Below are positions 6,165 to 57,706 of a DNA stretch of 64,000 bases, piece after piece. Made by a program: the position numbers and the translations under genes. The stretch is taken from positions 1,054,001-1,118,000 of the forward strand of contig CBFFSA010000002.1 in the NCBI GenBank assembly GCA_965644495.1, read 5' to 3'. The notes beneath the pieces are model-generated. The model did not search any database. It saw only the letters and a list, made by a program, of their open reading frames with translations, and was not told the DNA's origin. How positions within the stretch are numbered: the first letter of the stretch is position 1; the number at the start of each line of letters is the position of its first letter. This DNA is from Perkinsela sp. CCAP 1560/9. Its lineage: Eukaryota > Protista > Euglenozoa: Kinetoplastea.

Positions 6165-7229
6165 TCACAAGATGATGAGTTTTGTGCCACTAACGTCAAC
6201 CCATGCCAGAGTCGCAGGAAAACTGGACTTTTCAAGGACACCATGCAGTTCAGGATTAATGTGAAGCTGGATGAATTCTAGTTTCGGGGGAAGTCCATGA
6301 AACTGAGCTAGAGTATCAAAGTTATTGTCGTTACAGGATAAAGATGTCAATGTTAATGGCAGATGACGAAAATCTAGACACCCTGTAAACTGATTGTTTC
6401 CAAAGTTGAGATATGTCATGTTCTGTGGCAAGCAATCAAGTATCACGTTTCCTGAAAACTTGTTTTAATTTAAAGAAAGGGATGTTAAGCCCTGCGGAAG
6501 ACGAGTTAGGTCCACAATTCCGTGTAAATTATTTTTTTTCAATGCGAAATTTCTCCAAAGATTGCGGCAAATGTTGCCAATGAAGCCTACCGGAAAAACC
6601 CCTTCCCCAAGGATCGAATTTTCGTAGGTGTGGTGATGTTCTCCTGGAATCCCAACGAATTTCGGTGACACGTATGTCATCGACACACGTAACGCCTCTC
6701 CATTCGCATGCAGGGGTAGAGGTATTCCATGTGGGTTAAATTTATCATACCTTTATAAGGCAGAGAATATGCGGATAGGCCTGGGGGGCGCATATGACGC
6801 TGCCCAGACCTATCTTTTACAGACGTTATACCCGTCCTTCTGTCCAAACGGCAGATTCGCGGTTCTGCCAGATAATGAAACTGCCTCGAAGGGCGGTCTG
6901 CATTAGACTTTCTCGACATTTTTCCGCAAGCTTTGTGTCCTCGTCAAAGAGGAGATTGAGGTTTCGACAAGATGTGAGTAACGAGCCGCGGGCTCCCACT
7001 TCGAATACAACAAGGGTCGTCCTAGGGTGATTAATGCGTCGTTCATGGAAGAGAGCATTATATTTACGGGATTTGCCCTCGTGCGCCTGAGACTTTTTTA
7101 GGAACTGAGACTTTTTTAGAACGGATTTTCAAAATCTTTTATAAGTTGTGCGAGCTCAAATTCCTGTGGCAGGTTTCCTCTTACTTTTGCGGCACGCCGA
7201 TATGGTAAATTTGATGATGAACCGTCCAT
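6165..7229 (-). pseudogene. LRR pseudogene interrupted by a LINE 3' fragment
   Basis: ATG at 7229 (MDGSSSNLPYRRAAKVRG). Insertion 6736-7118 falls between codons ENPF and PTW. Further frameshift and stop downstream. Confidence 0.85.
6736..7118 (-). mobile_element. 5'-truncated 3' end of a HERO/NeSL-like RLE non-LTR retrotransposon
   Basis: Translates AHEGKSRKYNALFHER..VFEVGARG..ALRGSFIIWQNR, homologous to the C-terminus of the LINE at 35515-37680. Ends in TCTCTGCCTTATAAAGGTATGATAAA. Confidence 0.8.
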
Positions 7230-11242: not shown

Positions 11243-11641
11243 ATCAAAATCGGGTCCGGGTGATAGGTGGGGGCTTGAAGGGGTGCAAAGGGGTGAGATC
11301 GCGCCTTGAGTGCAAAAGCTTCCTCGCTTGTTTTCCATTCATGTACGATACAGTAAAAATAACCTAGATAACGTAATACGAATGTAATGTATTATTGAAA
11401 ATCCGAATCTTCCCGTGTGGAAATCCTAAAAATCTTGTCCAGTGAGAAACGGTTAGAGTTTCAGTCCTTTACAATTGTTTCAAAAGAGTCATATGAAAAA
11501 TAAATTCGCTCAACCACCTAGTAAATAAATTTTTATTAAACTCTCCCATAAGCTCCTTGTTTTCTGCAACACTTAGCCGCACCAACCTTGTTGGCAGTGA
11601 ATCTAACCCTGTTATGTGCTCAAGTCGATTGTTGTTTAACG

Positions 11642-12217
11642 TTGTTTATCATGCGCTCTTTGGCGCAGAGATAATCCCCTTAATGCGACGGCCGATATCA
11701 TCGGCACATAATCTGCCCACAACGGATGTCGCCAAAGGGGGTTCGACACGGACTCGGTCGGTAGAGGGGGTCCAGGCAACTCGCCCTCTCTTTACGCAGC
11801 CGGAGGGGCGTACTGCAACCGACTCGGTCCCAGTCGGTAGAGGTGGTCCAGGCAACTCACCACCTCTTTACGCAGCCGGAGGGGCGCACTGCAACCGACC
11901 GCTGCCTCGCGATTATGCGAGGCAGAGTCACGCCCAGTGGTCCTCAAGGGAGGCCACCATGGCGCATAGCTCCCGGGAAGAGACAGGCGCGAGAAGAAGA
12001 AAGCCGGGGAGGGAAGAAAACTCACTCAAGGAGTGAGCCGGGGAGGGGTGAAAAGTCGGAGGTACGTCCCCTACTTCCACGACAAGAGGGACAGTCCCTG
12101 CTAGCCGTCAGCCGGAAACGGGCATTTAAAAGGAAAATGTATGCCGTTTCCGGGAAAAGAAAGGAAGGGCTAGCAAAATGTACCAACAAGGTACAGAAAC
12201 TGTATCTTTATACAGTT
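11642..12217 (-). mobile_element. Candidate SL-RNA-derived SINE, copy 1
   Basis: SL RNA head, ~400-nt body with internal direct repeats, LINE-like hairpin tail ending GCATGATAAACAA. Clean insertion in an LRR CDS; second copy at 21849-22409. Confidence 0.75.
12051..12212 (-). ncRNA. Spliced-leader RNA sequence (exon lacking its first ~9 nt, plus intron)
   Basis: TATAAAGATACAGTTTCTGTACCTTGTTG|GTACA resembles the kinetoplastid SL exon and donor. TGTACC/GGTACA stem spans the donor. Further stems GCTAGCC/GGCTAGC and CCGGAAACGG/CCGTTTCCGG, then a T-run. No clear canonical Sm site. Confidence 0.8.
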
Positions 12218-17964: not shown

Positions 17965-18289
17965 GTTGAGTGGGATGCGAGTGAGTGAGAACGAGGTGTG
18001 TAATAAATATTTGAATAAATAGCTGTTTTCACTTATTGTACACCCATACTTATCTGTCACTACTTTTCGTGAAAAGGTGACAGAATCAATGAGAGACAGA
18101 GTATGTGAATAAATAACCATACCGTCAAACGTTCTTCTAAGGAACTGACGATTGGGCAGTAGATTGGGCATTTTTAGATACGGATATAGCAGTCTTTGCT
18201 TACATATCCTTGCTTGTACATGTAAACCCCCCTTCATCAATAAGGAACCCCACCCTATGCCACGTGTCCATTTGAGTTGATTTTTTTTG

Positions 18290-18610
18290 CTTTTCGCAGA
18301 TCTCAACACAAAGATCTTGCGCGTGAAGAAACGAGACAAAAAGAAACGAATACGTACATTTTAAAGAAGAATTACCATTTTGTCACCTTTTCCCCGTTGT
18401 TGGCCACACACGGCTCAAGGTGAGAAAAAGTCAAGATCGAATCATACAATAAATATATACAGTAAATATATTCTTGAGATAATTTAGCCCAATCTTTACA
18501 AACGCTTTTTATGAGGTCTTCCTTATTTGAAGTAGTGTACTCATCGACAAGCTCTTGCACCATACTCCATACGGTTTCCATGGATGAAAGATCTGGGGAG
18601 TTCAGTGGCC
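18290..18610 (-). mobile_element. Tc1/mariner transposase 3' relic
   Basis: KNWPLNSPDLSSMETVW..NGEKVTKW. Same family and 3' flank as 57070-57520. Confidence 0.75.
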
Positions 18611-19068
18611 AATTTTTGGCTATGTAGCACCTTCGGTGAATATTCATCGAACGGTTTCGAGACCAGCTTTTGAAAACAAACATTTACATAGAATAAAATT
18701 TATACCTCGTTCACATGTCTGGAGATGCCCGTGTGATGGCAGAGCCCACGAAAGCGACACCTACACTGTAGTTTACGTGTCTGGAGGCAAGGCCTAACTG
18801 TGAGCGTAGCCCACTTCTGGAGGCCCTACTGTGAGCGTAGCTCTGGGACAGAATTATATTTTATGGCGACCCGCGCGCTGGAGCGCGCGGGTCGTGCACT
18901 GAGAACCTATGTCTACCACTTCCGCAGGTTAGTGTATTTTCCTATACTGCGACACCTAGTTTACCTTTTCTGAAATTGTTTCCAAATTGTTGCCAATTAC
19001 TTTCTTCATTTACGATTTGTTAAATAAAACATTGTTAACATACAAAGTTAATTACATTGTAGATTGCG

Positions 19069-21349: not shown

Positions 21350-21850
21350 ATGACTCCCGGGATCCCTCCTCCCCTCTCTGCTTCTTCTCCTAGGTCCTCT
21401 CGACACCGGTCGGTAACCCGAAGACCCCCACGTTCCATCTCTCCTCGGAGCCGCTCCCGGAACAGAGCTCGCACCCCTCAGGCGAATGCTCCTGCTCCGA
21501 TACTGAAGAAAGCGTCAACCGTCTCCTTTGCACCTTTCCCCCCGGCTAACCTCTCCTCTAAGCCCTTCTCCACCGTCACCCGCATGGGCGGTAGTGACAC
21601 TGTGGCCCGAGACGAAATGGACAGCGACGGCCCGCCGCCCGGTGAGCGGTCGTTATCCCTACCCACAATGGCACAGCAGTTCAAATCCATGGACGCTGTC
21701 CGCCTCAAGCTCCTTCCTGCCCGAACCGGCTCAAATCGCTTTTCCGCGGAGACAGGAAGATGCGCAGTCACCTTATGGCTGGCTGTGACCCTCAGCGCCG
21801 AACACGACGTAACATCAATGATGGAGAAAGAGGCCCGTGAACGTCGGTTT
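21350..21850 (+). other. Pro/Ser/Arg-rich truncated ORF, possibly the 5' part of the CRE element
   Basis: Plus strand and GC-rich like the CRE. Joins in frame (ERRF|TLEAVW) to the Zn-finger ORF if 21851-22413 is removed. Confidence 0.4.
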
Positions 21851-22409
21851 GTTTATCATGCGCTCTTTGGCGCAGAGATAATCCTCTTAATGCGACGGCC
21901 GATATCATCGGCACATAATCCGCCCACAATGGATGTCGCCAAAGGGGGTTCGACACGGACTCGGTCGGTAGAGGGGGTCCAGGCAACTCGCCCTCTCTTT
22001 ACGCAGCCGGAGGGGCGTACTGCAACCGACTCGGTCCCAGTCGGTAGAGGTGGTCCAGGAAACTCACCACCTCTTTACGCAGCCGGAGGGGCGCACTGCA
22101 ACCGACCGCTGCCTCGCGATAATGCGAGGCAGAGTCACGCCCAGTGGTCCTCAAGGGAGGCCACCATGGCGCATAGCTCCCGGGAAGAGACAGGCGCGAG
22201 AAGAAGAAAGCCGGGGAGGGAAGAAAACTCACTCAAGGAGTGAGCCGGGGAGGGGTGAAAAGTCGGAAGTACGTCCCCTACTTCCACGACAAAGAGGGAC
22301 AGTCCCTGCTAGCCGTCAGCCGGAAACGGGCATTTAAAAGGAAAATGTATGCCCGTTTCCGGGAAAAGAAAGGAAGGGCTAGCAAAATGTACCAACAAGG
22401 TACAGAAAC
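21849..22409 (-). mobile_element. Candidate SL-RNA-derived SINE, copy 2 (exon remainder at 26262-26283)
   Basis: About 8 differences from copy 1 over ~560 nt. Same 3' boundary in an unrelated flank. Confidence 0.75.
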
Positions 22410-25400
22410 CTTTACACTCGAAGCCGTTTGGACGCTGCACGACACCCACAAGTCCATCGAGGAGCGTATCTATCTCATTAATGAAGGGTGTCTGGTTTGC
22501 TCCGAATGCGGCATTACGCAGCCGCATATTGTCTCCCTCCAGGCGCATCGCATCAAGGTGCACGGGCCGAAACGCCTAAGGGCTGCGTCACGGGTCCTGC
22601 TTCGGGAACACTCCCCGGAAGCCCTCAGGATCAAGGCCGATCGCTTCTCCTCCTTCATGGCTCTATATGAGTTCTGCACGATGGAGGCCCACCTCCAAAG
22701 GGCACAGGCGAGTGCGATGGCTGGAGGCCCACCCTGGCCCCAGCCCACCTTTCGTTCTCCCCCTCATCCCACACCTTTCCCTGGGATAGCGACGAAGCTA
22801 ATTCCCTCGCAGGCTACACCTGCACCGCCAATCAATCCCCAGGTCGACTCTGTTTCAGAACCCTTCAAGATCCTACTCGATCTCGGGCCGGAGCGAGCCG
22901 GATATGCCACTATCCCCTGCCCCCCGGACTCCTCTTTCCAAGCTTTCCTCGGCACAGTGGGGAACACTTTAGGGGTCCCTGGGGAAAATCTCCTCCTCAA
23001 AGACAGTGCTGGCGAAACCACCCCTATCACAGATCGGGAGGGCCTAGATCGCGCTCAACGAGTAGCGGTCAGCCTGTCCCTACCCCCGTAACAACGAGGC
23101 GGCCGTTATTTGGGTGTACGATGGGTCCATGCACGGGTTCATTAATGCCCCCGGACTACAGGCGGCCCACAACATCCCGGCCGGTCTGAGTGAGATTCTC
23201 GGTATTCCCCCAGTGCTGGCTGGAGCTTGGAAACCTCGTGAATACGAGGAGGGTGTGCTATGGTGTTTCCTCCCTACAGAAACCCTAGTCAGCGAAACGG
23301 GATGGACCGCCCGGGTTGTCAAATGCAATCTACGCAGGGGATGCATCGGGGCAAACCCTGGCCCCAGACACAAGAACCGAGAGTCGCTGACCTCATCCGC
23401 CCCCCAGCCCCGGCAGGCACCGAGCGAGACTCCGAGTGCCCTCCTCCAGGAGCCCGACACCCCTTCCCCCAGCAGGGAAGGAACTATCATGGAAGGAATC
23501 GAGGCTGTGACCTCACCGCAACGCCCTCCTTTCCATGCATCTTCCTCCCATTCTCCGCCTCCGTACTCCCACCGCGCAGGGACGGACCCCCCCGACATGG
23601 CCCCCAGCGCCACGCCCCCTCATACCCAAGGCGCGGTCACTGAGCAGGGTAACGTCACGCCTTACCCGGACAGCCTAGCCCAGCTCCTCGATAGGGGCTC
23701 ACTACGTAAACTGTACGCAATCCAATGCCCCGCGTGGAAAGACTACATTAAGTCTATCTGTAGCGACTTCTTGGGGAAGTCGCAGGAAGGGAAGACCAAA
23801 ATCGCCTGGGATCTTCTTCTCGGGGTTAAACGGTTCCTGTTTTTCCCCGAGGACAAGCTGTCCCAGAGGTAGTTGGCGAGGGAGTTACGGAAACGGGCTC
23901 ACCTAGAGGGGTCGGAATCCATCGCTCCAACTCCCCTCCTCACCAACAGTTTCCCCCGTTCTGTTATCAAACGGGTTACCGAGCTGATCCGGGCGGGGGC
24001 TTTCTCGAGGGCGGCTAAAATCTTGGAAGCCCCCCTCGATCCGCCGGCAAACCCGGCTACAGCGGGGGAACAGGTGAAACGCCTCCACCCTACGGGAGGT
24101 CCCCCAAGTTCGTCCCCCAAGTTCGTCCATGACAAGGAAAGTCATGGACCCCTCCCGTCGGCGGCAGATGTTGTCCGTAAGGCAACTAGCCTTGCGCCGC
24201 TTAGACCGCCAGGCCCGTCCAGATGGACCAAAGAACTCCTGGTCCCCATCCTCCAGGAGGATGACCCGAGGGACGTGGTCACTTGGATCATCCAAGGGAT
24301 CCTCACGAACTCCCTCCCTCCCACGATGAGGGATTTCCTCGCGGGAGCCAACCTCAAGCTCTTTAACAAGCCTGGGGCCCCGGTGGGACATCACTCCTCG
24401 TACAGGCCCATTGCCATGGGGGAGGTCATCCTGAAGCTCGCGGATCTACTAGCCCTTGAACAGGTCAGAGACCACCTCCCAGCTGTGTTTCAGGGCCTCC
24501 AATTCGGAGCCCAATACACTCAAGGATGCGAGCAAGTCGTGTATGAAGTGAGAGATCACTTCCGCGACAGACCCGATGAGGTGATCGTGGCGGTCGACCT
24601 GGAAAATGCTTTTAACAGCATTTCCCGCGCGGCCATTTTCCGAGCCTTGAAAAGGTACCAGAACCTTTTCCCTATGATCGGGATTTCCCTTTTCGGGTAC
24701 GGGACCCCTAGCAAGATCCACCTGGGGGAGGGGATTGCCGTCCCTAGCTCCCGGGGGGTGAAACAAGGGGACCCGATGGCGCCCATCCTTTTTGCCTTAG
24801 GGATACAGGGCGCCATCTCGGCCGTGGCGGCTAAATACTCTGGCTGTCTAAAGCTATGGGCATATCTGGATGATATAACCATAGACGCGGAGCCCGGGGT
24901 GTGCGTAAATGCCCTTGGCTCCATGGAAGCGGAGATCAAGTTTTTGGGCTTAAAGGTCAACACGGCCAAGTGCATGGTGGCTACCCGCCACCCGGACTTG
25001 TACTCGGTCTTCTCGGGGAGCAGGATGCAACATGCTCCGGGGGGGTTCAAGCTTCTGGGGGCGTATATTGGCGCCACGGAAGCAGTTGAAGAGGGATAGG
25101 TCCTATCGAAGGTTCCCAAGGTCACAAACTTCTTGGGTAAGCTGAAGGACTTACCCAGACAGTGCGCCCTTCCCCTTCTTCGCCTATTCGGGAGCCCCCG
25201 GTGGAACTACATAGTTCGTATGCATGAACCGGGGGTGACCAAAAAGGCAAACCTTCAGGTAGACGCGGCCATCACCGCATGCTCCTAAACCTTAATCGGG
25301 GGGATGGGTGCAATAGGAACGACGCCGTTCGCAAACAAACTTTTTACGGCGGACTTCCTGGGCACCATCCCCTTCGAAGACAAGGCGGAGGACATGCAGG

Positions 25401-26261
25401 CCAAAGCCGTCAAGGCCTTACAAGGCCGACCCCCTGGCACCCCAGCCAGGGAGCAGCGACGTGCTTATGGGGCGGCGGCTATGGACAAGGCACCGTCGGC
25501 CACGCATCTGGTCTGCATGCGACAGATTCAGAACACCCACTCCACCAAGTGGATGAACGCGTGGCCGAACAGGCCGGAGTACTACATGCGGGATCCCGAA
25601 TGGGAGACCGCCGCTAGGCTCCGGTACATGGTGGCCCCCACCTCCGAACCTGAGATCCAATGTGTGTGTGGCGCAGCCCTCAAAAACGAGGATTTCTACG
25701 TCCATGCCATGGATTGCAAAAAGGTTCGTAACAAGACTCAGGCCTCTCGCCATAAGGGGGTTAAGGAAACCTTCAGGAACCTACTGATCCAGTACGGATT
25801 CTCCCCGGACCTAGTCGAACCTAGGTTCGACAACGGGCGGGGACCGGACATCTGTTTCCTTTTGGGGCGGAAGCTCGTCCTCGTAGACGTGACGGTGGTG
25901 AACCCACTGGCACCGTCTTATGTGGACAAGGAGGCAGCAGACTCCTCCTTCACCGTGAGACAGGCCGAACGCCTCAAAAGGCGTACTCACGAAGAAATGG
26001 CGGGGGCCAGGGAGATGGACTTCTTCCCGCTGGCCTTCACCACTTACGGTGTCCCCGGCCCCGAGACCCTCCAGTTTCTTAAACTGGTTGCTCGAAAGGC
26101 CACCGGAGAAAAGAATGGTTGCCTCAGCCACTTCATCATGGCAATTGGGGTAGCCATCCAAAAGGGGAACGCCCAGATAGCGCACGCCGCGGTACGAAAT
26201 TGGTACCGGCGGGGCGTGCGCTAACTGGGCAACGGTGAGGAGGAAAAAAGAACAAAAAAAA
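22410..26261 (+). mobile_element. CRE-clade (SLACS/CZAR/CRE-like) non-LTR retrotransposon, degenerate
   Basis: C2H2 finger CSEC..H....H; RT motifs YRPIAMGE, DLENAFNSISR, GVKQGDP, YLDD; CCHC plus RLE (RHKG, PDI, VDVTV, FFPLAFTTYG). A-rich tail followed by antisense SL exon. In-frame stops at ~23870, 25097 and 25286, plus a frameshift. Confidence 0.9.
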
Positions 26262-26290
26262 ACAGAAACTGTATCTTTATAGCTGTATCT

Positions 26291-34830: not shown

Positions 34831-35271
34831 GTGGATTAGTATACTAGTACGTAATATAAATTTCACTACAGTGATTGAAACGAACAGCAACTAATGAATC
34901 CGTATGTTATATTTGAGTAGATAAAATAAGTGTGCTGATCAATATCCAGAATACCAAACGTCTGTTTCGGTAATAATACCGTGTGAATGAATGAAAACAC
35001 ATATTCTGAATATGTTGTTCACTTCAATATGATAATCACTTCTTTTTGAGTCTTGAACAAAACGTGTTGCCTACGGACTACTCGTGTTGCACTACAAATT
35101 TTTGAATTATTTTTCAGTTCCTTTTTATCTCCACTCTTTGGTACAGTTTATCAAACTAAGTTTAATCTCCGACTTTCCTTCATTACTTTTCGGAGAGTGC
35201 GCGAAAACGGGAGGCACATCCCAATTCGTCACATTACACATAACCCATTATTAGTCGCGTAACCTAACTTC

Positions 35272-35514
35272 TCAAGTTACATTTATTCCCGTCTCAGAAG
35301 TAAACAAACCATGTCGAACAGAATCTGGTAATTGCGATTTCTTGACCTCTCCGTGAAGACCTGTATTGTTGCTCAAAACAAGAGTTTTCAGTCCGCAGGG
35401 CAGACGCGTCAATTCCACATGCCTCGAGAATGTATTCTCCTGCAAGCAAATACCTCCTATCGTCAACGGAAGCTGTGAAAGATCGAGCGCACCGGAAAAC
35501 GAATTATTCGCTAA
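35272..35514 (-). pseudogene. LRR C-terminal fragment downstream of the LINE tail
   Basis: LANNSFSGALDLSQLP..TGINVT*. Confidence 0.75.
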
Positions 35515-37680
35515 TTTTTGTTTATCATGCAGTATGACTGCAGAGATTGTCACCTAAGAAAATACACGTAAATCATGTATAAACCCCGCACAAAACGGGT
35601 TTCCCTTAAGCTTTTCATCATCGCTATATGCTGGCTTCCGTCCAGCTCGGGTTATCGCGGTTTTGAAAAATCGCGAAACTTCCTCGTATTGCTCTTTTGA
35701 CAAGCTTCTGTCGACATTGCGAGGCGGTGGCCTTGTTACCTCCGAAAAGTGAGTTGAGCGCTCGCGTAGAGGAGTTGAGCTTCCCTCTGGCCCCCACTTC
35801 GATGACAAGAAGAAAGGTTGCCGGGTTAGTCATTTTCCTTTCGAGAAACAGATTCCCGTACTTCCGCACTTTTCATGTGAGGATAAAAAGTTTTCCTCCC
35901 ACGGAGAAGTGAGCTCAAGTATGAACTCAGTACCATTATGTAGCTTGATCCACCCATCAAGTCTAAGGGCCGTGTCCTGTTGACTTAGCCATGTTGGGGG
36001 GTTTCGGTAAAGAGAAAGATCAAAGTGGTACTGCGCTGTTTCTGGGGATGCTCTTACGGCATCTGCGATAGCGTGGAGTATAAGATCATGGCGGAACGTG
36101 TAGCGGCCCTGTTCAAGGGCCACCTTGCACCCTGTGAGGACATGTCGAACTGTCTGCACCTCCTCATTGCAAATGGGACACTTTGTGTCCGTGTGCGTAC
36201 TTAGACCCCAACGACGCAGTGCTGAACGAGTAGGTAGTGGTGTTTGGGTCAACACAGATGCAGTAAACCGGGAGAGTGCCTCACTGTTGATGTTACATAC
36301 CGCAACAGCAAAGTCTTTCGCAAGTTCGTCCTCAGTGGCCATACGGAACCACTGTGCCGCTATGGGAGCCCGTCGTTGCAGGGATTCGGAAAGGTGTCGC
36401 TCGTATTCACTCTCAATGAACCGCCGTGTCGCCACACGGTCTTCTCGTCGGTCGTACAGTTCAACTACTGGTTGGACGTGTCCCGTTGAGCGCTTGTGCA
36501 GTTCCCTGCGGATGCGGTGTCTTAAAGCCTGTTGCACAGCCGGGTCACGTGATTTCTGCATTTGCTCGACCAGTGTACTCCTGCAGAGTATCCACAGCTT
36601 TGAGAAACTAGTTAAGGCCCACCCCCGCTCAGAATAGAGAAGTTCGCTGGTTGCAGTTTTGGCCATATTCACCCATTTCCGAATGTGTGTAGTCGCAAGC
36701 TTTTGCAGCCGCAGGATGAAATTCAGTGTGATTCCCGGATTTACCGTCAGAACGTAGCGTAGACGGGAAATAATGACGTTATTGTAGACCCAGAGGCGGG
36801 CGGGCGTATCCATGGCACTTTCAGATACGTTGGTAAGCCAGTGGCGTAGTTGTGTACGGAGACTCTTGAACAACACTTTCCCTTGTTGGGCTCCAGGCGC
36901 TAGCGTCATGCCCAGAAACTGACTGCCTTTGTCGCAAACGTGGGGTATGCTTTCGCCGCCGGCACGGATGTGCGGTCTGTGGGTTTTGTATCCTCCATCC
37001 GCTACAGCCATATACTGAAGCCGACATTTCTGTACATTTAGCCGCATGCCTAATCTGGCGAGCACCTTTACCAGGGCGTTAGTAACATGCTGCATTTCTT
37101 CGGGTGATTTGGTAATGACGGCAAGGTCGTCCGCAAACGCCTTAAGGAATGAATCTTGCCCGCCCCATGTGATGCCATATCCTGGAAAGCTGGATCGAAG
37201 GTACCTTAAAACTACCTCCATCGCAAGGTTGAATAGCACAGGAGATAGGGTGTCGCCTTGAAGAACGCCTCGTTCAACGGGAATGTGGTTAGTCAACCCC
37301 TCAGCACACTTGACTCGGAGAGAAGCACTGGTATAGAGGGAGTGAACATATTCGATGATAATCGGCGACACCTTTGCCCATTGTAATACTTGGAAGAGGA
37401 TCGAGTGTGGAAGAGAACCAAAGGCGTTTTTCAGGTCGAATTGACCCAAGCAGTATTGCCGTTTGTGCTGCCTCTGAAAATCCAGCAGTTTACAAAGCGC
37501 TTGCGTGTGTTCAATGGTTCCATTGACATTGGGGAGAAAGCCTTTTTGTATGGTCGTGTCGATGATCCCTGTGCTGTCAGCGTGACTCAGAAGTTTGTGT
37601 CCTATGATTGAGTGGAGTAGCTTCCCCAGACAGCTGGTCAGGCTGATAGGGCGCCAGTTCGACAGTTTATCACACAAATT
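35515..37680 (-). mobile_element. HERO/NeSL-like RLE non-LTR retrotransposon, 5'-truncated
   Basis: RT motifs WRPISL, QKGF, DLKNAFGS, GVLQGDTLSP, FADD; CCHC KCPIC..HVLTGC; RHD, LELTSPWEEN, EVGARG. One frameshift near 35870; hairpin tail. Confidence 0.9.
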
Positions 37681-46322: not shown

Positions 46323-48270
46323 GTCTAAAATTCGTAAAAGTTGTCCAATTTTGGAAAATAATAGCGCATTGGATAGCTCTCACAGAGTTATATGCTTTAG
46401 GATAGGTAGCTCCCGGGGTTTGGGGGGTACCCCCCTTTCATGTAAGGGTCAAAAACACATATTGCAATACTTTAGTGGTGTCAATAATTTCTTTAATTTG
46501 CATTGCAAAAGACAATTAGTAACCACAGTGCCCCCCGTTCCGACTAATAACAATTTCACAACGCTTCCTGAAACTCTTCAACGTTTTCTGAACCGTTGCA
46601 GAGTGGGTCTGTTTCAATTTAAGGAAAGACCCCTCAATAGCGGCTTCCAGTTGCTGTCGATTTCGGGGTCGAAGAAGATTTTTGTCTGTGTCCATCACAG
46701 ACCAGAAGATCGCTCCAGCTATCTACGCCGTAAACAAGGTCATACCCCTCGTCGATAAGCTTAAGAGCCACATCCAGGAACGCAGGGGTAACCACCGTCG
46801 AAACACGCTCTCGGGATGCCGTTAACATGTCACGGCACCCGCACCCTTATCTGTCATAGAAACTCGCACCCTTATCTGTCATAAATGCACCCTTATCTGT
46901 CATACTGCACCCTTATCTGTCATACTGCACCCTTATCTGTCATACTGCACCCTTATCTGTCATACTGCACCCCTATCTGTCATACTGCACCCTTATCTGT
47001 CATATAAGCCGCACCCTTATCTGTCACACTAAGGTGCACCCTTATCTGTCATAATGCACCCCTATCTGTCATAATGCACCCTTATCTGTCATAATGCACC
47101 CTTATCTGTCATATGCACCCTTATCTGTCATAATGCACCCTTATCTGTCATACTGCACCCTTATCTGCCATAATACATTTTTTGTTAATTTTCTGTGAAT
47201 GACGGTGGAAGGTAGAGTCAGCACACGCATCGATTCAACTCATCGGTCGCATATCGCATTGTTATATCTCTTTCATTCTTTTTCGCGTCCACAGCTCCGG
47301 TTTTTTCTCTCTTTATGATATCTAGACCTTGTCGTATCTGGGATTTCTGTGGTTTGTCTCGGTGTCGTCCAATACAACTGATCATCACCTAGGGCTTCGC
47401 AAATTGCTTCCCACGAACTCAGCGTCACACTTTGACGTGACTCATTGGCCCGGCCGACCCCTCCGTGCGTTCAGCCTCTCATATTCCCCAAAACAACTAC
47501 CACCTTCCCCCCATTTATCAGGGGTCGCTCGCGCGACACCCGCTAAATAGGGGGGGAAGGTGGTAGTTGTGGGATATGGAGGCCTCTCGCAACTCCGGGG
47601 CCTCACCGGAACCACAATTGAGGTTACCTATTTTTTACGTTAACTGTGTAGCAAAATTGTAAATTTTTGGAAGGGGTTGAAATTTTTTTTTAGGGGTCGA
47701 TTTTTTTTTAGGGGTTGAAATCTTTTTTAGGCCTTGAAATATTTTTTAAGGGGTCGACTTTTTTTAATCGGTTTATGACAGATAAGGGTGCGGCTTATAT
47801 GACAGATAAGGGTGCATTATGACAGATAAGGGTGCCGCGTTTATGACAGATAAGGGTGCGAGTGGGTACCCGTAAGGGTAAAACGTTCAACCCAACGTTT
47901 TACAGTGTACTCATGAACACCAAAGTGCTGTGCCGTAGCGGAGTATGATCCTGTGCGCTCGTATTCCGCCACCAAGAATGCGGTGGCTCTCTTTGACGGG
48001 GGCGGGGGAAGAATACGATCTATCGCTCAGTACTCCACGGGAAGTCCTCGAGCAAGCGCGCTTTTGGGGCATTTTCTAGTAAAAAATGTAATTTCTGCAA
48101 GGGAAAAAAGCGAAATATGGTATTAAAAAATATGTGCGTTAAAATTGCAGGATTTTAATGCGCCTAAAACATACAACTCTGTGAGAGCTATCCAATGCGC
48201 TATTATTTTCCAAAATTGGACAACTTTTACGAATTTTAGACCCCCCCCACCTTTAGACCCGCACCCCTGT
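46323..48270 (-). mobile_element. Internally deleted Tc1/mariner-like element
   Basis: ~70-nt inverted repeats at 46323-46395 and 48170-48241. HTH start MPQKR..TAQHFGVHEYTVKRWVERF; C-terminus RPRNRQQLEAAI..NGGHCGY. Relative at 57754-58050. Confidence 0.7.
46836..47864. mobile_element. Non-autonomous CACTA/CMC-like element
   Basis: CAC(C/T)CGCACCCTTATCTGTCATA termini, 2-bp GG duplication. About 16 left and 4 inverted right subterminal repeats of GCACCCTTATCTGTCATA. Confidence 0.75.
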
Positions 48271-55705: not shown

Positions 55706-56639
55706 GGGGAAATAAAATTGTATCGCTGAAATACTTTTGCGGTAGTCACGTTGTTTAAAGGTCTTTACTTTTTTGTGCAATATAGAATCACTCCTGCTGC
55801 GAAAGCAAAAGTGTACAGATATGCATCGTTACTTTTTCTGACTATGAAATCACTGATTATGATTCGCTAAACGAACCAAAAACGAATTTCGCTCTTTGTA
55901 TCTCCATTTTTTCATTGTCTTGACCAATACATACACCACGAACACAAAAACAACGTGTTTCCATGATTGGTGAATCACAAATAGATTTTCGTAATGATGA
56001 GTTTCCTATGGCTTGTGGTACGTCGAAAACGGTCTTCGCCACGAAGCAAAGCACCTTCTTATGAAGCGGAAGTTTTAAATAAGCATGCTTTTTTTTCGAT
56101 CTGCTTATCAGAACAATGCAAACACGATCAACACAAAAAACGAAACGTTATCTATTGCGAATTTCCTCTACTGCGGATTACGGGCCGATGAAAAAGTTAC
56201 TTTCTGAACAAGTTGCTTTCTGAAGAAAGTCACAAGACAAAAATGAGCTTGCCCAAGACATGATCCACTCCGTTCTTGTTACCGAGAAAGCTGTATTCCA
56301 GGTGAAACTGAACCAATGTTCGCACTTTTTTCAATGTGGTAAAATTTTTACCTGAACGTTTTATCGCTCCTTTCTTTTAGAGGGGTGGACCGCCAAAATC
56401 ACGATTCCTTGGCGCACCCGGCCGCACCCGCTAAAGCTAAGCTATTTCAATGGGCGAAAATACTTGGCAAATTTTTCGACACCTGAGCGTCCGTTTTGAG
56501 TCCGTATGGTCTGAACTTCTTTTGTGTTTTTGACATGTTGCTTTCCTTTTGTCACGAGGTCACAAGCCGAGGGGGAAGCAAACTTACCCCAGGAGAGTGA
56601 GCCTGTGAGGGATGAAGGGGTAAAGTATCGACAACAGGA

Positions 56640-56810: not shown

Positions 56811-57069
56811 TGTATGCCACTGACCATGAGCATTAGTACCATCTAACCGAGAAGCTACGAAGCGAGCTCGAGCCTATTATTCAATATGAAAAATGTGGCT
56901 CTGTTAAATGGAAAACTGCCCTGGCAAGGGCGAAAAAGCATAAAAGTTTTTCCGAGTTGTAATTCGTAGAGGAGTCAAACGTTCCTTTTCCAGCATATGA
57001 ACCCCTCCGCACCAATAAGGCACCCACCCTTAACTTTTCAGCCAAATGTCCGTTTGGGCTGATTTTTGT

Positions 57070-57520
57070 TGCATTTTGCAGATCTCAACATAAAGACTTT
57101 GCGCGTGAAGAAATGAGACAAAAAGAAACGAATATGTATATTTTAGAGAGAGATTACCATTTTGTCACCTTTTCTCCGTTACTCGCCACACAAGCTTTGA
57201 GGCGAGCATCGAAGCTCAAAACCGAATCATAAATATAACCTTGAGACAATTTACGCCAAGCTTTACGTACGCTTTTTATGAGATCTTCTTTATTTGTCGG
57301 ATTGTATTCATCTACAAGACTTTGTACCATGCTCCACACGTTTTCTATTGGTGAGAGATCGGGGGAGTTAGGCGGCCAATTTTTCAATAATTTCATTTTG
57401 TTGTCGTCAAGGTACGCTTCTGTTTCCTTCGCAGTGTGAGGTGTTGCCCCATTTTGCTGAAAAATACAGTTTGGGGTGAATGATACTTTTTTTAATGTTT
57501 TAATGTACGAAACACATGTA
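57070..57520 (-). mobile_element. Tc1/mariner transposase 3' relic
   Basis: FQQNGATPHTA..WPPNSPDLSPIENVW..NGEKVTKW. Confidence 0.85.
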
Positions 57521-57524
57521 AAAA

Positions 57525-57706
57525 ACGCATGTATGTGTGCACACGTCGGGCACAGCCGGTGGGAGGGGGAGGGTGGTTCGAACTCCGAGCCACAGTATGC
57601 ACAGAACAATAGACCCTTGAGGGGGAGTTCTGCCATGGGGGGAGAGATTAAAGAAGGAAAGGACAAAATAAGTCAACAAGGTACAGAAACCATATCTTTA
57701 TCGTTA
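57525..57706 (-). pseudogene. SL-capped mRNA 5' fragment encoding an RPA12-like Zn ribbon
   Basis: TAACGATAAAGATATGGTTTCTGTACCTTGTTG, 37-nt UTR, ATG at 57636: MAELPLKGLLFCAYCGSEFEPPSPSHRLCPTCAH. Product identity is tentative. Confidence 0.7.

Follow-up and report, generated by a model that had tools for sequence, protein, structure and literature searches.

The window, by which we mean the whole 64,000-nt stretch of DNA analysed here from Perkinsela sp. CCAP 1560/9, encodes an RNA-editing ligase homologue (E 8e-58 to PDB 1xdn) and is rich in DNA transposons and MITEs, which is unusual for kinetoplastids; one TIR element (46323-48241) encloses inverted 20-bp tandem arrays at 46846-47212 and 47776-47859. 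In the genome searched (21 Mb), the spliced leader (SL) is 38 nt in length, the SL RNA gene has the canonical intron start GTATGAG and lies in a 297-bp tandem unit, and SL-like sites number 676. Together with this leader, the ligase homologue and the intronless genes mark the host as a kinetoplastid; it has no close relatives among sequenced organisms, none turning up for its Snu114 protein, and its SL was absent from the papers searched. At 35516-37671 on the minus strand lies a 5'-truncated copy of a LINE, family D, which encodes a reverse transcriptase (RT), a CCHC knuckle, and a restriction-like endonuclease (RLE), is interrupted by one frameshift near 35870, and ends in a terminal hairpin (35515-35547, minus strand) made up of CTCT, a 6-bp stem, ATGA, and a short A-rich end. 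Leucine-rich-repeat (LRR) coding sequence forms the 3' flank, that is, the target, of this copy (35271-35515, minus strand). A second LINE insertion on the minus strand (6736-7118) comprises the last 359 bp of family C, with a terminal hairpin at 6737-6768 (minus strand) and ~24 extra bases at the 5' junction. The same kind of hairpin terminates two copies of an SL-headed non-coding element, subfamily B. Copy 1 (11640-12217, minus strand; hairpin at 11641-11673, minus strand) sits inside an LRR gene and is headed by nt 11-38 of the SL exon (12184-12211, minus strand). Copy 2 (21847-22409, minus strand; hairpin at 21848-21880, minus strand) has its SL split by a broken CRE/SLACS-like element (22410-26261, plus strand), which is inserted antisense in the SL exon, so that the 5' part of the SL lies beyond it at 26262-26281 (minus strand). 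An earlier note on this DNA had described these four tails, and place, strand, and letters were verified for all of them.

The CRE-like element has an A-rich end and a 7-bp duplication flanks its insertion in the SL copy of the non-coding element; SL-headed retrocopies thus create fresh landing sites for SL-specific elements. Because its end has no terminal hairpin, we rejected it as the driver of the non-coding elements and used it as a negative control; its RT is 25% identical to that of LINE D. Elsewhere in the window, Tc1/mariner-like transposase sequence lies behind the SL-headed 5' end of another element (57665-57702, minus strand; 56994-57384; 18219-18617).

The window copy of LINE D is 99.2% identical to a full-length, SL-headed copy (L031) of 5.0 kb with a single ORF of 1613 aa, and the LINE C fragment is 98.9% identical to a full-length copy (L042), family C being 4.7 kb in length with a single ORF of 1528 aa. 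The proteins of both families contain an RT, a CCHC knuckle, and a C-terminal RLE, the architecture of R2-group (RLE) non-LTR retrotransposons. The best PDB match of the LINE protein is R2 (716 residues, E 6.5e-32), and a Pfam search of the protein returned only RVT_1 and zf-RVT, with neither APE endonuclease nor RNase H. We do not assign these LINEs to the R2 clade proper: their flanks are dispersed and not 28S rDNA, and an Rfam search of the window, where no LINE 5' end is present, was negative. The N-terminal halves (L031, 1453-3000; L042, 3190-4750) contain three to six C-x-H-x-C-x4-C-x-H-x-C-C-K repeats without a Pfam match, probably a zinc finger that binds the target or RNA. In other samples, distant RT homologues (P0006, P0008, P0010, P0015) have a C-terminal ubiquitin hydrolase (UCH) domain. 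Across the genome, the endonuclease region has 153 matches, many at 45-80% identity, and at least ten LINE variants with 40-70% protein identity bear the tail. On contigs 1-4, 29 of the 35 LINE endonuclease C-termini are followed by a tail in a tally made by hand, counting any tail pattern within ~120 bp downstream, and the remaining six match no pattern used. All LINE ends examined at the level of the full sequence carry the tail; the other families were judged from coordinates and short pattern matches. A separate array (G000:C53 22236-38372; L034-L036) consists of four 5.37-kb tandem units, each with a short LINE D end and, after the tail, a 20-nt poly(A) that sets it apart from dispersed copies.

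The SL-headed non-coding elements, here termed passengers, comprise four subfamilies (A, B, E, and F) of ~570 bp, all with the tail. Searches of the window with ARAGORN and Rfam gave 0 matches each, that is, no tRNA, 7SL, or 5S head with a Pol III promoter; the passenger head is an SL exon, which sets the element apart from classical (Pol III) SINEs. Comparison of A with B, E, and F revealed a 290-bp head that is 77% identical and upstream tails that are unrelated, which suggests that tails may have been exchanged between subfamilies. We considered two sources for the passengers and rejected both. An origin from the SL RNA gene does not fit, as the true intron starts GTATGAGAAG while the element continues GTACATTTT, and the two share no more than a GTA start; an internally deleted LINE C or D (a SIDE) does not fit either, as the SL alone matches full-length C and D and there is no common UTR. 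Deletion of an unsampled parent LINE is a possible origin. An old relic of the passenger head (~80% identity) lies at 56564-56624 of the window (minus strand), and at four loci (L049, L051, L068, and L076) passengers are inserted immediately after a LINE tail or another passenger's tail, in head-to-tail stacks.

B copy 1 is absent from runs X2 and X3, which have the same species label and six other bases in its place, implying that at least B has moved recently; the LINE C insertion is absent from one X3 contig, on which one side has diverged like a paralog. None of the RNA sequencing runs searched for the element contains the SL-headed element. The nearest homologues do not count as independent species: all lie in one ENA assembly (ERZ24900291) that carries identical passenger elements and therefore comes from the same or a very close organism.

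In LINEs C and D and their relatives, a truncated SL forms the start and is followed by a short UTR; passengers A, B, E, and F start with the same SL. Tail-bearing copies start mostly at SL nt 10-13 (mode 11), a figure to which the search contributed some bias but with which the loci selected by tail agree; in six other SL-headed copies the start is at SL nt 3-4 instead. Retrocopies of the SL RNA itself (exon plus part of the intron, with an A-rich end and no hairpin tail) start at SL nt 3-4 (L055 1500-1600; L001 near 2934, minus strand). Traces of re-splicing are visible in some copies: in L009 and L010 the junction with the SL is an AG lying 15 nt inside the head, and in L008 it is the AG within an older SL. 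In B copy 1, a stretch of the head with approximate limits of 12068-12102 (minus strand) is complementary to nearly the whole 38-nt SL. The passenger head thus pairs with nearly all of the SL (duplex z about -5 to -7.7), including nt 2-10, and because these nucleotides are missing from the genomic copies, the pairing implies an RNA with a full leader. Among the LINEs, the UTRs of C, I, and J contain perfect SL complements of 11-14 nt (z -2 to -7), and D is without a clear complement. Anti-SL stretches (window 12068-12211; 5'UTRs of L041, L075, and L076) lie 3' of the leader in passengers and in several LINE families and cover or adjoin the AG inside the SL.

At empty paralogs in the window, the 3' junctions fall within ~6 nt of ATGATAAA, and there is no target-site duplication at two empty sites. 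Of 56 distinct LINE and passenger insertions, 14 have a 3' flank that reads as LRR in register, compared to a background of 2.7% and after removal of one TA-repeat false match; the LINE D copy of the window is among the 14. LINEs and passengers accordingly have in common three signs of the machinery that inserts them, namely the lack of a target duplication, an SL start near nt 10-13, and an LRR 3' flank.

The terminal hairpin is tightly linked to element ends. The strict pattern TCTCTGC-N4-20-GYATGATAAA has four matches in the window compared to 0.00 expected, and 60 in the genome compared to 0 for the reversed control; a relaxed pattern has 270 matches genome-wide compared to 22 in the control (roughly 250 relaxed matches), and background in the relaxed patterns is 8-45%. 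Thirty strict-pattern loci fall into four groups, i.e. LINE families C and D and the ~570-bp non-coding subfamilies A and B, and within each group similarity extends upstream of the motif and ends directly after it. For analysis of covariation, we assembled 15 tail variants (ten LINE, four passenger, and one short C-like copy), which share nothing beyond CTCT, ATGA, and an intervening stem with a U-A closing pair. The earlier note had called TCTCTGC and GYATGATAAA conserved; the CTCT..ATGA core is indeed invariant, whereas the rest varies and even the GC after CTCT covaries. It had also proposed that the inner stem co-varies, and this held: 94.3% of the stem cells are paired compared to 67.9% in shuffles, in a set of related variants from which the structure was itself derived, with changes on both sides in 22 cells compared to 6.2 in shuffles and in five of the six stem pairs. 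Slid registers are all paired at less than 58%. When arms were swapped between variants, the observed 47 of 48 pairs compared to a mean of 29.8 and a maximum of 43 in 20,000 swaps. Both the shuffle and the arm-swap controls leave the relatedness of the variants in, the variants spanning 40-70% protein identity. The covariance model that the earlier note had suggested building matched only the four element ends in the window and, in 202 kb of selected loci, element ends only. These data support selection on the tail for pairing, and they place it at the 3' ends of the LINEs and the SL-headed element and almost nowhere else.

The tail extends further upstream than the hairpin. In each 3'UTR examined, the sequence folds into an outer helix, P1, that encloses a hairpin, P2, with a CG-7nt-CG core, with or without a third hairpin, P3. 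In LINE D, P1 surrounds P2 and P3 in a three-way junction (35551-35611, minus strand; P2 core, CG-7nt loop-CG, at 35587-35597, minus strand), and in LINE C, which has no P3, the P2 core (6789-6799, minus strand) sits atop a 12-bp P1 helix. In an RT tree built without references from named RLE clades such as R4, NeSL, and HERO, the only supported groups were D+G+H, all with P3, and I+J, both without P3. The claim that upstream sequence is unrelated is correct for the letters of the upstream 60-80 nt but not for the structure, as fold and loop motif are common to the tails. The P2 loop has the consensus TYNNDKG, and the P2 motif, which was defined on the analysed sequences and then tested genome-wide, occurs 18-47 nt before CTCTGC 171 times compared to five in the control; before CTCTA there are 94 matches compared to 43, a background that is largely one repeat. 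The motif also marks LINE families left out of its definition. Exceptions are the abundant subfamily E with a 6-nt loop, LINE N without P2, and both B copies in the window, each with one substitution in the P2 core (copy 1, 11714-11724; copy 2, 21921-21931; both minus strand) that is intact in most other B copies; consequently, either P2 is not strictly required or those copies are dead. From 5' to 3', the order is P1 with P2, optional P3, the linker CTCT, the terminal hairpin, ATGA, and a few A-rich bases, and this arrangement, which lies within ~6 nt of the true 3' junction, ends nearly all LINE families as well as the SL-headed non-coding elements. The complete signal is thus probably a two-part RNA structure of ~90-110 nt, of which the terminal hairpin would be the 3' half.

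The R2 protein requires a structured 3'UTR for target-primed reverse transcription (PMC13586686; PMC3414825). In the reading that we favor, with a probability of roughly 0.7, the tail belongs to a bipartite RNA signal at the 3' end that serves target-primed reverse transcription and is common to the whole LINE group, and the LINE protein is predicted to bind this tail and to move the passengers in trans. RNA of an element would be made by polycistronic transcription and trans-splicing; the LINE protein would read the single-stranded invariant letters (CTCT, ATGA, and the P2 loop) together with the shape of the stem and nick the target DNA, in many cases an LRR gene at a single register; reverse transcription would begin at the A-rich end and copying would halt near SL nt 10-13. 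The non-coding elements would mimic the signal and be mobilised in trans, probably by several LINE families and not by one. For the earlier proposal that the hairpin is the recognition signal of the RT, position at the 3' end, selection for pairing, and rarity elsewhere are all as expected; the putative signal is larger than the hairpin then described, and its role is a prediction from sequence. We also considered that the structure may mainly set or protect the 3' end of the RNA, either through polycistronic cleavage or by conferring stability without poly(A), with an RT of relaxed specificity starting there, and such a role would likewise lead one to expect structure at the end. This reading would agree with most copies ending 4-9 nt past ATGA without poly(A), as a polycistronic system then needs precise 3' processing, and with the presence of SL-headed copies of other RNAs in the genome. 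However, the start at SL nt 3-4 and not 10-13 in the six other SL-headed copies hints at another enzyme, the LINE D array has poly(A) after the tail, and R2-type proteins need their 3'UTR (PMC3414825); we therefore regard this explanation, though the main rival, as unlikely, while noting that a role in 3'-end formation and one in RT recognition are not mutually exclusive.

Alternatively, the inner stem and loop might serve as a code that pairs each passenger subfamily with one LINE family of the same hairpin, and the earlier note had held that the tail identifies the partner family. In line with such a code, the LINE at G000:C1:3746459-3747212, whose 1637-aa frame is uninterrupted, carries a terminal hairpin that differs from the one in subfamily A by a single base, and D is the nearest to subfamily B among the ten LINE tails compared (25 identities in ~32 nt, upstream z 3.5), further families being seen by pattern match only. 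However, the former LINE differs from A upstream, where the P2 loop of A matches other LINE families; none of the LINE ends on contigs 1-4 has the stem of B, E, and F; and inner stems differ freely even among close LINE families. We consider such a code improbable. The expectation that one LINE would match the SINE tail more closely was not borne out, in that the best of the ten matches (D to B) is weak, and extended 3' identity of a passenger to one LINE was not found among the ten LINE variants compared. Identification of a single partner likewise fails, given that the tail is found in ten or more LINE variants (40-70% protein identity) and that the inner stem of the SL-headed element occurs at no LINE end on contigs 1-4. 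Because no LINE examined matches a passenger tail throughout, the tail, as far as these comparisons indicate, points to the LINE group and not to one family. Finally, the reading that unrelated hairpins resemble each other by chance or that the motif is a general feature of the genome, for which one might cite an invariant core of only eight letters and the 8-45% background of the relaxed patterns, is already refuted for practical purposes by 0 expected matches in the window, 0 strict matches in the reversed control, the position at element ends, and the covariation.

The principle of tail sharing has long been known in animals and plants; it is the setting here that is new. R2 and R2 SIDE of Drosophila willistoni have a common 3' fold with compensatory changes, and as in that system (PMC3414825) a single-ORF RLE LINE is accompanied by a ~530-570-bp non-autonomous partner that has the 3' RNA fold in common and is not transcribed by Pol III. 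R2 SIDEs, however, are 64-81% identical to both parent UTRs, carry an HDV ribozyme, insert into 28S rDNA, and end in poly(A) (PMC3414825), whereas in our system the sequences in common are limited to the SL and short motifs, no ribozyme match was obtained, the dispersed insertions favor LRR sequence, and the head is an SL. Stringent-type SINE/LINE pairs have 3' stem-loops in common (PMC3747384), and pairs such as eel UnaL2/UnaSINE and maize ZmSINE2/3 resemble our system in the 3' stem-loop, the variable compensating stem, and the conserved flank and loop letters; in those pairs, the SINE head is of the tRNA (Pol III) type, a SINE is nearly identical to one LINE over 50-100 nt, and partners are mostly of the CR1/L2/RTE type (PMC3747384), while here we find no tRNA head, no single matching LINE, and an RLE-type driver. 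Among kinetoplastids, CRE/SLACS/CZAR of trypanosomatids are likewise RLE-type non-LTR elements tied to the spliced leader, but CRE inserts in SL exons, has a poly(A) end, and makes target duplications (PMC12278014), whereas in these LINEs, which are dispersed, the SL forms the element's own 5' end and the RT is only 25% identical to that of the CRE-like element in the window. The ingi/RIME, L1Tc/NARTc, and SIDER elements are also pairs of autonomous and short non-autonomous retroposons, but with an APE endonuclease, a common 5' 77-nt promoter/ribozyme, and unspliced transcripts (PMC8190864, PMC3383444), in contrast to the RLE, the common 3' structure, and the SL head found here. As in SL-tagged retrogenes of dinoflagellates, DNA copies start with a leader remnant and leaders are occasionally stacked; those retrogenes are host genes (PMC5585692, PMC6050394), whereas here the leader heads active mobile elements. 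In Diplonema, gene models have been annotated as R2-type RT, and the text alongside these models describes no such system (PMC10161547). A literature search that left out most subscription papers and Repbase returned no report of an SL-headed RLE LINE with SL-headed passengers.

As a tentative and broader model, we speculate that the passengers represent a promoter-less, SINE-like class that lives on trans-splicing. Each generation would be excised from a polycistronic transcript of the host and would receive a new capped SL at its old leader copy or close to it, the head would fold over the whole leader and so block translation or mask the AG in the old leader, and the two-part tail, exchanged between subfamilies, would hand the RNA to any member of the R2-like LINE group. 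With at least ten LINE variants and the passengers' four subfamilies, the tails offer a natural covariation series from which to study the RNA signal of an RLE-type RT beyond animal R2, and a signal of ~100 nt is compact enough for direct testing and relevant to R2-based gene insertion. To the four clades (INGI, CRE, TATE, and VIPER) reported for trypanosomatids and Bodo saltans (PMC12278014), these elements add a fifth kind of retroelement, with activity recent enough to be polymorphic, and they show how, in a genome with trans-splicing, a non-autonomous element can do without a Pol III promoter.
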